From Trichosphaerium sp. ATCC 40318 (lineage: Eukaryota; Protista; Tubulinea): a stretch of 64,000 bases of DNA. Below the pieces are notes generated by a model. The model ran no database searches. It was not told where the DNA came from and was given only the letters and a program-made list of their open reading frames with translations. Of the stretch, positions 3,733 through 49,440 are shown piece by piece. A program made the translations under genes and the position numbers. The first letter of the stretch is position 1, and every line of letters begins with the position of its first letter. Location: positions 558,001 to 622,000 of the forward strand of contig JALMLS010000322.1 of assembly GCA_038496445.1 (NCBI GenBank), in the 5' to 3' direction.

Positions 3733-4402
3733 CTTTGAACGGGTTTTTTAATCAAAAAAAAGAAAAAAAAAGTTGTCGAGGACCCGAAGCTCCCCTTTGT
3801 TTTTTGCGTTACAGTTTGGTGATTAGTATTATTATATCACCTTTCTGTTTATGTAAATTCTTGTGGTGTACTATTTATAAGCTCGGCGTTATTATCATCC
3901 CCCGCTATTGTCTTTGATTTTCAAAAAAAAACACAAATAAATAAAGACTTGCGTATTTAAAATCTAGTGGTTTTCTTTGAGTTCGAATTCTTTAGAAGTG
4001 TTCATGAAAAGATGTCTTTTTGTGTATTTAAAAATAAACCAGACGTTGTCATTTTTATTTAGAGCTTTAGTAGTAGATGTGGATTGTTGACTCAAACTTT
4101 GCAAGACGCAGTTTGACGAAAACAAGAATCAAAAAACCTCACTGAACTACACCTTTACACGGCCGAAACGCATCCTTGATAGCAGTATCAGCTCACCAGC
4201 ATAAAATATAGTACGTTTTTGTACATTTGTTTGCCAGGAGATTTAGTTGGCTCTAGAATGCGCTCGAGGAGTCTATCATTAGTGAGGGCTGTTTTTTACG
4301 CGTTAAAAATACCTTTTTCGTTAAATAGCTTTAAAAACGTTCTACTATGATCTTTTTGCGAAAATGCTTCCTATTCTGTCCTAACAACGCATAAATAGAA
4401 AA

Positions 4403-44128: not shown

Positions 44129-44704
44129 ATGACTAACTACAAAATTGTCGTATTTGGAGCTGGAGGTGTAGGCAAATCAGCACTTACAATACAACTATTA
44201 TACAACCACTTCGTATGGAATTACAACCCAACAATCGAAGACGGATACAGAAAAGTCGTAACTATTGATGATAAAATGGCTGTTCTTGATATCCTCGACA
44301 CTGCTGGCCAAGAAGAATACTCAGCTCTCAGAGACACATATATGCACAGTGCTGACGGCTTCATTCTTGTATACTCTATAACCGACAGTGTAAGCCTTAT
44401 CGAGCTAGAGCAATACATCAAACAAATTAAAAGAGCACGCGAACAAGATGTTCCTCCTTTTGTCATTGCTGGAAACAAGTGTGACTTGGATTACGATAGA
44501 GCAGTATCAACAGAAGAGGGACAAGAGTTTGCTGATCTTCATAACGCTCCGTTTTTTGAGACATCAGCAAAGACAAAAACAAATGTTGAAGAATCTTTTT
44601 ATGAAATAGTCCGCGAGATAAGACGACAACAAGAAACACAATTTACAAAAAGTAAGAAAAAAAGGAGGAGAAAGCTATCTATCACAAAATGTAAACTTGT
44701 ATAA
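44129..44704 (+). CDS. ras: Ras-family small GTPase, intronless
   Basis: YKIVVFGAGGVGKSALT, PTIED, LDILDTAGQEEYSA, GNKCD, ETSAK, polybasic tail and CAAX (CKLV). Confidence 0.97.
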   Translation: MTNYKIVVFGAGGVGKSALTIQLLYNHFVWNYNPTIEDGYRKVVTIDDKMAVLDILDTAGQEEYSALRDTYMHSADGFILVYSITDSVSLIELEQYIKQIKRAREQDVPPFVIAGNKCDLDYDRAVSTEEGQEFADLHNAPFFETSAKTKTNVEESFYEIVREIRRQQETQFTKSKKKRRRKLSITKCKLV

Positions 44705-45215
44705 AAGCCGTGACGAAAATGTATATACACAAAAATAACGATATCGCAACAATTGTACATATAATTGTATAAACCTGTATAAAGAAAAGAAAATGAAATA
44801 AACCTAAAAATAGCCAAACCAAATTGTTTAACGTTCTTGTAATCATCTTTTTCAATCTATTCTTTACTTGAGATGATCTACTGTGTACTTAATAGCATTC
44901 AAGCTATGTTCCAATGGCTAGTAGCAATAAAAACGTTGCACGTTTTATTACTACAGAAAAAATAGAGCAATTAACAAACAAGAAGCTTCTTGTACAACAT
45001 CATTTGTTTTTTCCATATTGTTTATCATCAAGTGACTATACTTTGTGACTTTAACCCTTTCAGCATGCTCTTGACAATCTCAATTGAGAGTACCACATGT
45101 GAAATGGGAAGAGCAAATAAGACAACACAATTCACTAGTAAAAAACATAGCAGAATAACAGTTAATTGAAGAGTTCGCTACTAATACATTTATTCAAAAC
45201 AAAAAGATAAACACA

Positions 45216-47086
45216 TTATTTAGCGTTTGTATTTACAACAGGTAACTGAGGAAGTATACCTTTACAAGCACCTTCAATAAACCAAGTACCAAGACAATAA
45301 AGTTTTTGAAACTTTCCAAATTCTTGACTGCCTTCTCTTGTACATGGAAACTGTACTGTATAAACGACATCAGAGGATGAGCTATCCGGTGTATGTGTAA
45401 CATGGCCGTTAAATCCTTTACCAGGTCCAGCTGTAAGCGTAATTTTTGCTCCTTTTGATAAATCCCATTTAATCAAATTACTGCTCTTCTTTCCAGTGAC
45501 AGGATCATAAGGTACTTGAAATACATGCTTACGTCTCGTCTTTGCTTTCTCTGGTATATTTGGTGTATAAGGAACAGGGTTATATGGTAATTTCATCTCA
45601 ATGGCTAGTAGAAGCATAACTTCATCGATACTCGAGAAAATTCTAAGCGAAGCCAATTTATCAAGTTGTGTTCGTTGAAATCCAATGATAATAGCACCGA
45701 GACCCTTTCCTCTTTTAACGTATTTCTTGCCCGCGGTTTCAACCATACGATCGGCATTCATACCACAAAGACTTGTACCCAGTGTAAGTACAAGGTCTGC
45801 TTTTTGTTCTTCCTCTAACATCCATTGAAATAAATCGCCTCGAAGACTTCCAGTCATAGGAACAACAGGGTTTGACGGATCAAACCAAGCGCCATGGATT
45901 TCGTTTATAGCTTCTTGCGGGAATCCAGCCTTAAAAAATATTGTAAGAACATGATGAGGTGAAAGAGAAAACGAACAAAAAAAACGAGGCTCAGACAAAA
46001 TAAGAAGAAAAAAGTGAGAAAATCTCGCTTGTACTCACTTTCTGTGGTAATCCATCGTGGTTTTGTTGAACCCAATGTTTTAGGTAACCAGCTTTTGATA
46101 GTGCAGCAAGCGTATAATGCGCAAAGGTAGGTTCAGCATTCAATCCAGATTTTTTTTTAACTCGGAATTTTGCTTTGGTTCCAGTCGCAACTGACTGCTT
46201 TGACTGTGAAGCATAGTCATCAATACCACTTGCTGTAGATATACCAGCTCCTGTGTACGCCACACAATGCTTAGATTTCCTAAAAGAGGATCAGAGACGC
46301 CGAAAACAGCAAAGAATAAAGAAAACAATTCACGAAACGAACCTTAGCAAGCGAGCCATTTCCTTTACTTTCAGACGCAGTGTGATTGGATCTTCGCTAT
46401 ATTCATGCGCTTTCATCGATTTATAACCTTTTCTTGCCTCAACATCGCAAAAAGTCCTCAAAATAGGCGCATTCCATCCTTTGCCGTTTCCAAGATGTCC
46501 ATGCATGTAAATATCGTTGACATTCTCAACATCGTTCATTCTGCGTATACCTGCCTTTTTATCATCTCCAGACTTTGGCGACTCGATTTCCTAGCATTAG
46601 GCGTTAGACAGAGGTGAAACAGACAGAAAGCCTACGTACCATTTTATCATCAACTGCGAACTTCTCTGTGTGTCCATTGTTAGGATCAGAAAAGCTCAGC
46701 TCGTGTTTGAATACGTGTGAAGCTCCGTTTACATCTGTAATCTTAATATCGATCGTAAAGACACCCCACCCTACTCTCGTGACCTCATATGGCGCTGACA
46801 TGCATACAACGTTTCGTGGGGTGAATGTTGAGTGGAGCCCAAATTCAACCGCAGCAATAAGCTCCAGACTACTCTGTGGCTTTACATAGCATGTCCATTG
46901 GCTGTTTTTTGTATTTGGAACTGGTGTACATGTGTTTCCAATCAATACGTCTACACTACCACTCGCAAGATCGTCTCCAGGTACTTTTACGGGGTTTATA
47001 GATAATTGTTTAAAGTATTCTGCGAGAGCTGGGTTAACCTTTGCTACGTCTTTAGCAGTGAAGGGTAAATCGCCTGTTGTTGCCAT
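45216..47086 (-). CDS. YEATS-domain / sirtuin (SIRT6/7-like, zinc-ribbon-less) fusion protein; 4 exons (47086-46640, 46590-46343, 46279-46039, 45929-45216)
   Basis: YEATS: VLIGN...WTCYV...VEFGLHSTF...APYEVTRVGWGVFTIDIKI...FKHELSF. Sir2: YTGAGISTASGIDDY, AEPTFAH, VQQNHDGL, EIHG, ADLVLTLGTSL, QRTQLD...LRIFSSIDEVM. All introns are GT-AG and keep the frame. Confidence 0.88.
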
Positions 47087-47731
47087 GCTTGTTTGATTTG
47101 TTATTTCTTACCGCTGGTGCGAAAATAGGCTCGTTAAATGCATTCACTGATTTCCATTTCGATGATTTTTTTTATTGATTTTGTTCTCAGGAACATTGCT
47201 ATGAAGAGTCCATTTTAGCAACGTGTAATGATATCATGTGATTGAAAAAGAGATGTTCACTAACGTTAGAATGTTACAGTGAAACACGTCAGTTGTTTCT
47301 TTACTTTTATTTGTGTTCAGTTGTTTCATAATATGTGGCTATGTAGACGCAATGTTTGGTATCTAGTTTTACGTTAAGCGTTATGTGAGCCAGTGATTGG
47401 CATTGTCAACGTAAACCATATCTCGAAATCTACATGAACGTTGTAAAGTGCAGTTCCCGGGTTTGATATTCACTTTTCAAAGATAATTGTACGGAGTTGT
47501 CAAACTGTCTACATTGTACGTTTGTCACTTTTTCTTGAAGTGGAAACGTTTTGCGCAAACCGCTATCCACAGAGCATATTCTCCTTCGATGTGTGAAGCT
47601 AAAACGCAGACTTTAAAACGCTACAGTGACATTGACGATAATTTGTTAGATAAAATCAATCAACAGAAAACAACATATTTTTCACGATTACACAACCACA
47701 GCAACTACTCCTCGACATCAAGAATATCAAA

Positions 47732-49440
47732 ATGGATCATCCACAATCAAAGAAGGTAATACAAATACTCTTCAACAGCTTTGTAGGTTTTTCTAATGAT
47801 TAATTAGCGTTGCAAAACACCCGACATTCGCATGGATAGGTTACTACAACTTCCACTTGAGTTACAACTCGATATTATCGATCTAGATACAGAAGTATAT
47901 TTAAAGTGGCCTCTGTTATCCAGACACACGGCAATGACAACCAGATTCGACAGTGACCTGAACAAACACGGTAAATGGGAGAAACATCTAATTTTGGAAA
48001 AGATTGATTTCACTATTTCTCAATCAAAACTGTTAACTCGGAAGTATTGGAAACATGGTCAGTACCACGGAGAATTAAAGAAATGGAATTACAGCGGCCC
48101 GTATGACAAAGGTCATCTTAGTCTGAAATGTAACTATGACAACGGTAAACTACATGGAGAGTACATGAAGTGGCACAATAATGGTCATTTGAAACTACAA
48201 TGTAACTATGTCAACAGCAAACTACACGGAGAGTACAAAAAGTGGTATGAGAATAGTCAATTAGCGTTCAAGTGTTTCTATAAATGTGGTGATGTTGAAG
48301 GAGAATATAAAGAGTGGTACAAAAGCGGTCAAAAGTGGAAGGAATGTCATTTTTCTATCCCTGAAAATGATCCTGAACCTGAATCTGACAGTGGGAACAA
48401 AATCGACGTGCTCGAAATATAGAGAAGCCCGCAAAGAGATGAGGAAAAAGTATCAAGAAATCCACCATACACTTGATGGAGAATACAAAGAATGGCATGA
48501 AAACGGGCAATTGAGTTTACAATGCAGTTTTAAAGAAGGTAAGGAAGAAGGAGAACATAAGGAGTGGTACAACAACGGTAAATTGGCGGTTCACAGGAAC
48601 ATAGTAAACGGTGCTGGAGAATTTACCAGTTGGCATAACAATGGCCAGTTGAAGTCAAAAGCTACTTTGATAACACATAATATGAATGGTAAACTAACCA
48701 AGTGGCATGACAATGGTAGATTGCAGGTACAGTGTACTTGTATTGGGCATTTTCCTCTTATTTCCATTGATGCCCCTGAATGGAAGCTTTTAAGTTTCGT
48801 TGAACAAATGACTGTGTGTTCTCATAGTCATAAACTATACACACGAGTACTGAAATGCGCTCAGGGTTTCGTAGAAGGAGTATATAGAGAATGGTGAGAT
48901 AACAGTGCACTACATATTGAGACAACAATGGTTAAAGGTGTACTACATGGAGAGTATTTACAGTGGGACAAACAGAGTCACATCTTACAGGTGAAGACTA
49001 ACTATGTACATGGCAAAGAACATGGTCAACATACTAAGTGGCACACCAATGGCCGCATATCAGAGCATTGTAGGATGGCAAATGGCAAGAGAGAAGGAGA
49101 GTATAAGAGCTGGTGTTTTGAAGGTCAATTGGATGTCCTTAGTTATTTTGTTAATGGCCAACAAGAAGGCAAACACTATGAGTGGCATGTCAATGGACAA
49201 TTGATTAAGCAACAAAATTATAAAGACGGAAAACTTGATGGCCTATCAACAAGATGGTATAGTGACGGTACTCTATTTATGCAATGCAACTTTGTCAATG
49301 GAAAAGAACAAGGTTTTAAACAGGAATGGTATGACAATGGACAAACGAAGGAGCAATACTTTTACGTCAATGGAAAACCAGAAGGTGATTTCAAGAGTTG
49401 GTATGCTGACGGAAGTTTGGAACATCACTTATACTATTAG
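47732..49440 (+). pseudogene. F-box-like + MORN-variant repeat gene, copy B, with a frameshift (~48410-48422) and an in-frame TGA (48895-48897)
   Basis: MDHPQSKK exon, intron 47756-47807, then RCKTPDIRMDRLLQLPLELQLDIIDL. The repeats continue across three ORFs and REW*DNSALHIETTMVKG stays in frame. The lesions could also be assembly errors. Confidence 0.65.

Follow-up and report, generated by a model that had tools for sequence, protein, structure and literature searches.

To our knowledge, no characterized sirtuin carries an acyl-lysine reader domain, and the characterized YEATS proteins, among them GAS41/YEATS4, Yaf9, Taf14, and AF9/ENL, are non-catalytic subunits of chromatin complexes. Erasers positioned by a binding module of their own are familiar from PHF8/KDM7 (PHD-JmjC), KDM4 (JmjC-Tudor), and HDAC6 with its zf-UBP domain, which belong to other enzyme classes and act on other marks than those considered here. 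The class IV sirtuin SIRT6 is held on the nucleosome by its zinc-finger module, as seen in SIRT6-nucleosome structures, and among prokaryotic defense systems are some that combine a zinc-less Sir2 domain with a YEATS-like one (pYEATS). A class IV lineage outside SIRT6/7, SIR8 of sponges and cnidarians, bears an accessory CAP-C domain (Gold and Sinclair 2022, PMC9486876). Here, we describe a gene of the amoeba Trichosphaerium sp. ATCC 40318 that fuses a YEATS domain to a class IV Sir2 domain in a single protein. It lies on the minus strand of a 64,000-nucleotide (nt) stretch of contig JALMLS010000322.1 (positions 558,001 to 622,000), referred to below as the window, and all coordinates given are those of the whole window.

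The encoded protein of 549 amino acids (aa) aligns with SIRT6 and SIRT7 in the N-terminal extension, in GAGISTASGI, QN.DGL, E(I/L)HG, and LGTSL, and in the distal Rossmann strand, and it shares with GAS41/YEATS4, Yaf9, Taf14, and AF9/ENL both a match to Pfam YEATS and, in alignment, the cage residues LH.(S/T)F and GW G.F. It differs from SIRT6 and SIRT7 in having a short conserved loop, AWFDPSNPVVPM, where these carry a Cys4 zinc ribbon of ~45 residues, in the exchange of SIRT6 Arg65 for Ala, Val115 for His, and Asn240 for Gly, and in the addition of the YEATS domain, an N-terminal helix, and a C-terminal SH3-like barrel. From the YEATS readers it differs in that its YEATS domain is covalently tied to an enzyme, and in a Thr that takes the place of the cage Ser. 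Like SIR8, it represents a class IV lineage outside SIRT6/7 with an accessory domain; however, the SIR8 rows align through the zinc-ribbon region (PMC9486876), which the YEATS-sirtuin family lacks, and neither the window protein nor 83 relatives gave a CAP_C match. It resembles the prokaryotic defense fusions in passing the pYEATS model, but has no match in PADLOC and a Sir2 domain of the eukaryotic class IV.

We found no description of a YEATS-Sir2 fusion in the literature, including a chromatin-evolution preprint and the sirtuin-evolution paper, whose text and Table S1 list no such fusion (PMC9486876). Public data sets name such proteins automatically, as 'NAD-dependent SIR2 family protein deacetylase/transcription initiation factor IIF auxiliary subunit' or 'Sirt7 protein family'. 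The fusion is, in our view, a genuine architecture, conserved and expressed, whose catalytic core is unusual and for which we found no published description; we do not regard it as a new category of system.

Gene structure and transcript evidence

The gene is a single four-exon unit that encodes an N-terminal helix, a YEATS domain, a class IV Sir2 domain, and a C-terminal SH3-like barrel. Splicing of exons 47086-46640, 46590-46343, 46279-46039, and 45929-45216 removes introns of 49, 63, and 109 nt, all three with GT-AG borders, and leaves an open coding sequence of 1650 nt. By reading of the sequence, an in-frame TAA lies eight codons 5' of the ATG at 47086. Homology searches were run exon by exon, with the orthologs P0164 and P0001 as stand-ins for the spliced 549-aa protein. 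The features of the gene are as follows.

45216-47086, minus strand: entire coding region, four exons, 549 aa; spliced translation open and in frame, with the three joints present in contigs of four runs from three studies
46640-47086, minus strand: exon 1 (aa 1-149), N-terminal helix and YEATS domain; Pfam YEATS 4.9e-16, pYEATS 8.7e-9, best PDB phmmer match GAS41 at 2.3e-8
46991-47068, minus strand: conserved N-terminal helix (aa 7-32, LPFTAKDVAKVN...FKQLSINP), predicted from an ortholog model and kept in the YEATS-less relatives P0180, P0183, and P0178
46983-46990, minus strand: GTAAAAGT, directly after codon Pro32 (46990), phase 0; hypothetical second donor whose use would remove the YEATS core from the product, from sequence reading
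46643-46969, minus strand: predicted YEATS beta-sandwich (~aa 40-148) with pocket residues H85, T87, and F88 (46823-46837) and W107 and F110 (46757-46771), from alignment to GAS41 and conservation in 90 domains
46591-46639, minus strand: intron 1, 49 nt, GT-AG, phase 0, with an in-frame stop at 46604-46606; precisely absent from contigs of runs X1, X2, X4, and X5
46343-46590, minus strand: exon 2 (aa 150-231 plus 2 nt), linker, conserved RM...MHG..G..W motif, and class IV N-terminal extension (EY.D.P..L..KV..LA), from the family consensus and alignment to the N-terminal segment of SIRT6/SIRT7
46280-46342, minus strand: intron 2, 63 nt, GT-AG, from the spliced translation and contigs
46039-46279, minus strand: exon 3, Rossmann NAD motif GAGISTASGIDDYAS (46207-46251) and QQNHDGL (46048-46068); Pfam SIR2 29.1 bits
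45930-46038, minus strand: intron 3, 109 nt, GT-AG, from the spliced translation and contigs
45216-45929, minus strand: exon 4, catalytic NEIHG (45891-45905; His324), short loop in place of the zinc ribbon (45822-45890), LGTSL (45768-45782), remaining Rossmann fold, C-terminal domain, and stop, from PDB phmmer alignment to SIRT6
45219-45593, minus strand: conserved C-terminal beta domain (aa 425-549), predicted SH3-like (Tudor/KOW-type) barrel; AlphaFold2 (AF2) predicted local distance difference test (pLDDT) 94.9
45189-45194, minus strand: AATAAA, putative poly(A) signal ~24 nt 3' of the stop codon, from sequence reading

Logan contigs from the runs X1, X2, X4, and X5, which represent three studies and whose RNA origin we presume, skip exactly 49, 63, and 109 nt at the predicted splice sites. 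The joint of exons 1 and 2 is covered by 103-248 nt on the contig's shorter side, and one contig spans from 47109, in the 5' untranslated region, to 45373. We read these runs as transcriptome assemblies because their contigs lack all three introns and end within the gene; no unspliced contig over the gene occurred among the contigs of the four runs. Since intron-free contigs bridge YEATS to Sir2, a joined mRNA exists. Between contigs and window there are 16 coding differences, 14 of them synonymous, and neither of the 2 nonsynonymous ones touches a pocket or catalytic residue.

The sequence-only reading of this DNA had joined YEATS to Sir2 in frame through a 49-nt phase-0 GT-AG intron (46639-46591), a join now borne out by the open spliced coding sequence and by contigs of the four runs that connect exon 1 to exon 2 across 46640/46590. 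The unspliced stop that it placed at 46604 is indeed inside intron 1, the motifs LHSTF, GWGVF, GAGISTASGI, QNHDGL, EIHG, and LGTSL all lie where it had put them, and the profiles it named, PF03366 on exon 1 and PF02146 on exon 3, both score above their cutoffs. Its refuting scenario of two separate mRNAs is contradicted by the contigs. A related concern is that two adjacent genes were wrongly joined, a YEATS gene ending at 46604 and a sirtuin gene starting at Met167 (46539). Without splicing the open reading frame (ORF) of exon 1 does end at the stop inside intron 1, a conserved Met (RM) stands at the domain border, and a prokaryote-style gene caller split the corresponding ORFs in another genome (L001, below). 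Nevertheless, intron 1 is removed exactly in contigs of all four runs with the flanks given above, no unspliced contig was found there, and full-length fused transcripts are present in Paramoeba, Dracoamoeba, and Paulinella. Exact splicing therefore effectively excludes the two-gene alternative, which we hold to be extremely improbable.

The YEATS domain and N-terminal helix

Exon 1 matches Pfam YEATS (PF03366) over aa 62-133 with 58.9 bits (cutoff 22; E 4.9e-16), and its best solved relatives, by PDB phmmer, are GAS41 and Yaf9, with LHSTF and GWGVF aligned to GAS41 LHESY and GWGEF. The same residues also match pYEATS (PF20305) with 35.6 bits (cutoff 26.9), 23 bits under the eukaryotic model. 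Among 90 YEATS domains fused within the family, the cage residues are widely retained (His85 in 80, Thr/Ser87 in 82, Phe88 in 81, Trp107 in 81, and Phe110 in 83), as are Trp64 (81) and His128 (76), and the loops around the cage vary freely. At what we take, from the AF9 and GAS41 structures, to be the position of AF9 F28 and GAS41 H43, the window protein has a non-aromatic residue. The AF2 model of the ortholog P0164 places eight strands over residues 43-148 at pLDDT >90. The residue pattern fits selection on an acyl-lysine cage, and we infer the ligand from the characterized YEATS family. The earlier identification of exon 1 as a YEATS domain with intact pocket residues is upheld by both the PF03366 match and the conservation across the 90 domains, and judged from residue conservation, the role of reader is well supported.

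Ahead of the YEATS domain, the equivalent of the N-terminal helix in the ortholog model (residues 13-35) is predicted as helical with pLDDT ~95. The YEATS-less relatives P0180, P0183, P0178, P0205, and P0206 keep this helix, joined directly to the linker. Because the helix is present in relatives without the reader, YEATS behaves as a domain inserted between helix and core. Residues 1-90 of a further, close relative, P0186, resemble a YEATS domain in degenerate form, with the LH.TF and GWG motifs missing, which suggests that the reader has decayed in some lineages.

The Sir2 domain

Exon 3 matches Pfam SIR2 (PF02146) with 29.1 bits against a cutoff of 24. Exon 4 alone falls below the Pfam SIR2 threshold and is matched instead by PDB phmmer and by a profile of the family, and searches with NCBIfam returned only subthreshold matches to CobB-type deacylases. 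In the phmmer alignment of exon 4 to SIRT6, two aligned stretches are separated by the missing zinc-ribbon region, and the alignment is interrupted over SIRT6 residues ~130-182. Compared with solved sirtuins, the family profile ranks SIRT7 (1.5e-38) and SIRT6 (1.2e-37) first, ~20 orders of magnitude ahead of the next best (1.8e-17), and a Foldseek search with the P0164 model returns SIRT6 at the top (E 3e-16; template modeling score 0.68 on the target), followed by SIRT7, with ranks 1-36 all SIRT6/7. By these sequence and model comparisons, the Sir2 domain clearly classes as eukaryotic class IV (SIRT6/7 type). The catalytic His, GAGIS, GTS, and the Asn of QN.D are invariant or nearly so in the family, and the Gln and Asp of QN.D are retained at >=90%.

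Relatives and spread of the fusion

The YEATS-Sir2 fusion recurs and is conserved across distant protist groups in both domain orders. A HMMER scan with exon 4 returned 847 cluster representatives at E <1e-3, including 182 at E <1e-30. All 83 long representatives match SIR2, and their additional domains comprise YEATS (24), KOW (9), zf-UBP (5), CAP-Gly (2), UBA (2), and SAP (1). In a word-indexed search with the Paramoeba ortholog, 67 of the best 120 matches combine YEATS and SIR2, and none of these 120 lists NCBI or UniRef as its source, which may be why the architecture seems to have escaped notice. Among named organisms, the fusion occurs in Paramoeba aestuarina, P. atlantica, Dracoamoeba jomungandri, and Paulinella micropora. 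The closest named relatives are discosean amoebae, and full-length identity between the D. jomungandri ortholog and the window protein is 56.5%. The ESM Atlas has a cluster of 97 members, 94% of them with SIR2 and 91% with YEATS; most of the few that are classified belong to Chlorophyta.

A profile of the YEATS core applied to 260 fetched relatives was positive in 84, with YEATS N-terminal to the Sir2 core in 74 and C-terminal to it in 10. Many YEATS-less database entries are 5'-truncated, and counts of YEATS-less proteins are accordingly upper bounds. In a maximum-likelihood tree made from the Sir2 core by a quick search, with no outgroup, the C-terminal YEATS form appears at several separate places, with clustered labels and many changes required. 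In L001 (3276-5218), part of a 404-kb ENA contig of an AT-rich, amoeba-like genome, a YEATS ORF lies directly 5' of a Sir2 ORF, the two overlapping as called by a prokaryote-style gene caller, with a short GT..AG intron-like gap (~3830-3902) after the YEATS domain. The fused gene is probably under-annotated in assemblies with prokaryote-style gene calling.

The reader is one of several modules attached to this core. Sibling zinc-less sirtuins carry CAP-Gly, zf-UBP, UBA, or ubiquitin-like modules in place of YEATS or beside it; those with CAP-Gly are P0245, P0251-P0253, and P0256, and those with zf-UBP (five representatives) show an HDAC6-like combination. One protein, P0028, unites YEATS, SAP, and SIR2, and another, P0232, unites YEATS, ubiquitin-like domains, and SIR2. 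Of these modules, zf-UBP, CAP-Gly, UBA, and SAP are eukaryotic and bind proteins or chromatin.

This variety of modules bears on a second proposal of the sequence-only reading, a sensor-effector module by analogy with prokaryotic conflict systems. Spelled out, a YEATS-like sensor would bind a ligand and switch Sir2 on as an NAD-degrading effector, as in prokaryotic SIR2 defense proteins and pYEATS fusions. Exon 1 passes the pYEATS model, bacterial pYEATS clusters figure among its closest feature-based neighbors in the ESM Atlas, and the family shares the lack of a zinc ribbon with the SIR2 domains of defense systems. The eukaryotic YEATS model scores far above pYEATS, however, and the acyl-lysine cage residues are conserved. 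PADLOC returned no families for P0164, P0001, exon 4, or exon 1, the Sir2 domain is clearly class IV, the modules of the sibling fusions are eukaryotic peptide-binding modules and not immune sensors, and the differences between strains are mainly synonymous (14:2), as for a conserved gene. One preprint counts pYEATS among the ligand-binding sensors of prokaryotic immunity (bioRxiv 10.64898/2026.10.19.760177). We nonetheless consider a role as sensor-effector improbable, and the missing PADLOC match, the eukaryotic class of the Sir2 domain, and the eukaryotic modules of its siblings leave the proposal without support.

Forms without the reader

A further explanation, which would add to the others and not compete with them, is that the reader is optional, such that the gene or close paralogs also yield a YEATS-less sirtuin that keeps the helix. 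In P0180 (432 aa), which is 77% identical to the window protein and its sister at 99% support, YEATS is missing and the helix is followed at once by the linker, at a point 15 residues ahead of RRM. In the window, splicing from GTAAAAGT to the acceptor of exon 2 would yield a product of exactly 432 aa, matching P0180 in length and layout. Helix-only forms also stand beside YEATS forms elsewhere, in P0178 next to the Dracoamoeba protein P0164 and in the Pellita protein P0183 (named isoform i2), and P0204 and P0262 are short and long transcripts of one organism. On the other hand, the YEATS-skipping joint was not seen in the contigs of the four runs, though contigs drop rare forms, and proteins of the P0180 type may be paralogs. 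The sister pairs are only 77-79% identical and are therefore not isoforms of one gene. In JGI metagenome contigs the YEATS-skipping junction was not found, but the canonical junction of exons 1 and 2 was likewise absent there, so that this negative carries no information. We put an optional reader forward tentatively, as a possibility that we hold to be unlikely on balance.

C-terminal domain and full-length model

The C-terminal 125 residues gave only generic structural matches, the best of which was the PHF20L1 Tudor domain at Z 5.1, with NusG/Spt5 KOW domains also among them. Pfam KOW is matched in 9 of the 83 long relatives, and DUF1541 gave a weak match under its cutoff (E 0.0087). With structural matches at Z <=5.1 throughout and no clear solved relative, we assigned the domain to no family. 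The AF2 model of P0164, built from an alignment of 139 sequences, has a mean pLDDT of 93.5 and a predicted template modeling score of 0.86, and is both confident and compact. That score, together with the insertion of YEATS between helix and core, suggests a fixed orientation of the domains.

Genomic neighborhood

On the plus strand, convergent with the YEATS-sirtuin gene, lies an intronless Ras/Rap-like small GTPase (44129-44704; 191 aa) with a CAAX-like end, CKLV, for which the protein collection searched has no entry of identical sequence. On the other side of the YEATS-sirtuin gene, ORFs rich in MORN-like repeats (YxGEW / GxxHGxY) at 47832-48897 on the plus strand are divergent from the gene and have the intergenic region 47087-47831 in common with it.

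A proposed YEATS-targeted class IV sirtuin

Our best explanation, to which we give a probability of about 45%, is one protein with YEATS set between a short N-terminal helix and a SIRT6/7-derived Sir2 domain lacking the zinc ribbon, followed by the SH3-like barrel, that carries out YEATS-guided deacylation near acylated chromatin. We propose that the YEATS pocket would dock on acetylated or crotonylated lysine, most likely of a histone tail, and that docking would keep the NAD-dependent Sir2 active site beside acylated chromatin, where it would strip acyl groups off nearby lysines. A binding module would position an eraser here just as in PHF8/KDM7, KDM4, and HDAC6, with YEATS taking over the targeting job of the SIRT6 zinc-finger module. 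Such action would be self-limiting, in that the enzyme destroys the type of mark that recruits it. With the zinc-finger anchor lost in the family, another anchor would be needed, and the variety of plug-in modules among the siblings fits this idea. The repeated occurrence of the fusion, in either domain order and in several sources, speaks for a functional coupling of YEATS and Sir2. The SAP domain of P0028 and the class IV ancestry lead us to favor chromatin as the target, which we infer from sequence together with deacylation as the chemical step; the siblings with CAP-Gly and zf-UBP indicate that the sirtuin family as a whole is not confined to chromatin.

Several observations weigh against this explanation. 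The spacer between the catalytic His and GTS measures 36 aa and contains no Cys in the window protein, and in 248 of 248 relatives it has 33-37 aa with 0-3 Cys, mostly 0 or 1, and so no Cys4 zinc ribbon, which is a hallmark of characterized sirtuin deacylases. The QN(I/V)D motif reads QNHD here (46048-46068), with its His invariant in 139 family sequences, and the position of SIRT6 Asn240 is mostly Gly or Ser in the family. The cofactor loop reads xDYA in ~195 of 198 relatives (GIDDYA in the window protein) versus GIPDFR in SIRT6, which puts Ala at the position of Arg65. In SIRT6 itself, R65A is reported to lose deacetylase and keep mono-ADP-ribosyltransferase activity (PMC9662279, a review). 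In addition, the full-length model is that of an ortholog of 56.5% identity and not of the window protein, and the nuclear location, ligand, and activity of the window protein are all predicted.

The same features raise the possibility that YEATS targets the protein as proposed above and that its Sir2 domain is a protein mono-ADP-ribosyltransferase, which reads an acyl mark and writes ADP-ribose nearby. The Ala of the xDYA loop corresponds to the state of the SIRT6 mutant, the missing zinc ribbon together with the invariant QNHD suggests a remodeled substrate site, and class IV sirtuins are those with documented ADP-ribosyltransferase activity (PMC9662279). SIRT6 G60A is reported to show the reverse of R65A, with deacetylase kept and ADP-ribosyltransferase lost (PMC9662279), and the equivalent of Gly60, required for ADP-ribosylation, is retained in the window protein. 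Conversely, what holds for the SIRT6 mutants may not apply to a family with coevolved changes, such as the Lys two residues after the Ala (consensus DYASK), and the catalytic His and the remaining deacylase machinery are intact. The loss of the zinc ribbon, the Ala at Arg65, and the SIRT6 mutant data therefore make the chemical step uncertain. We rank deacylation as the most likely step and give ADP-ribosylation substantial weight, although on balance we think it an unlikely activity of this protein.

For YEATS-guided deacylation, then, the role of eraser is plausible but unproven. The "sirtuin eraser" of the sequence-only reading stands insofar as the Sir2 domain is of SIRT6/7 type and has the catalytic His and NAD motifs; the erasing of acyl-lysine may not hold, given the absent zinc ribbon and the Ala at Arg65. 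Likewise, the fusion that it offered as an acyl-lysine editing enzyme proved real, expressed, and conserved, and its self-targeting and crotonyl preference are still conjectural.

A broader proposal sees in the gene a single branch of an extensive radiation, among protists, of zinc-less sirtuins derived from class IV. These would swap modules that target them (YEATS, zf-UBP, CAP-Gly, UBA, SAP, and others), and their remodeled site (Arg to Ala, QNHD, no zinc ribbon) would perform acyl-mark-dependent ADP-ribosylation or another non-deacylase NAD reaction. We consider this proposal as a whole rather unlikely. If the site were indeed not a deacylase, the YEATS form would convert one chromatin mark to another rather than erase it, and inclusion of YEATS might be switched by alternative splicing or by choice of paralog.

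The YEATS-sirtuin would offer a natural and compact test case for how the reading of a mark directs an enzyme active on marks of that same class. The family shows that a SIRT6/7-type core can dispense with the zinc ribbon, and it naturally bears a separation-of-function substitution that has been used experimentally in SIRT6. Because the Arg65-to-Ala state occurs here in nature, the question of which class IV activity was selected, deacylation or ADP-ribosylation, becomes directly testable.

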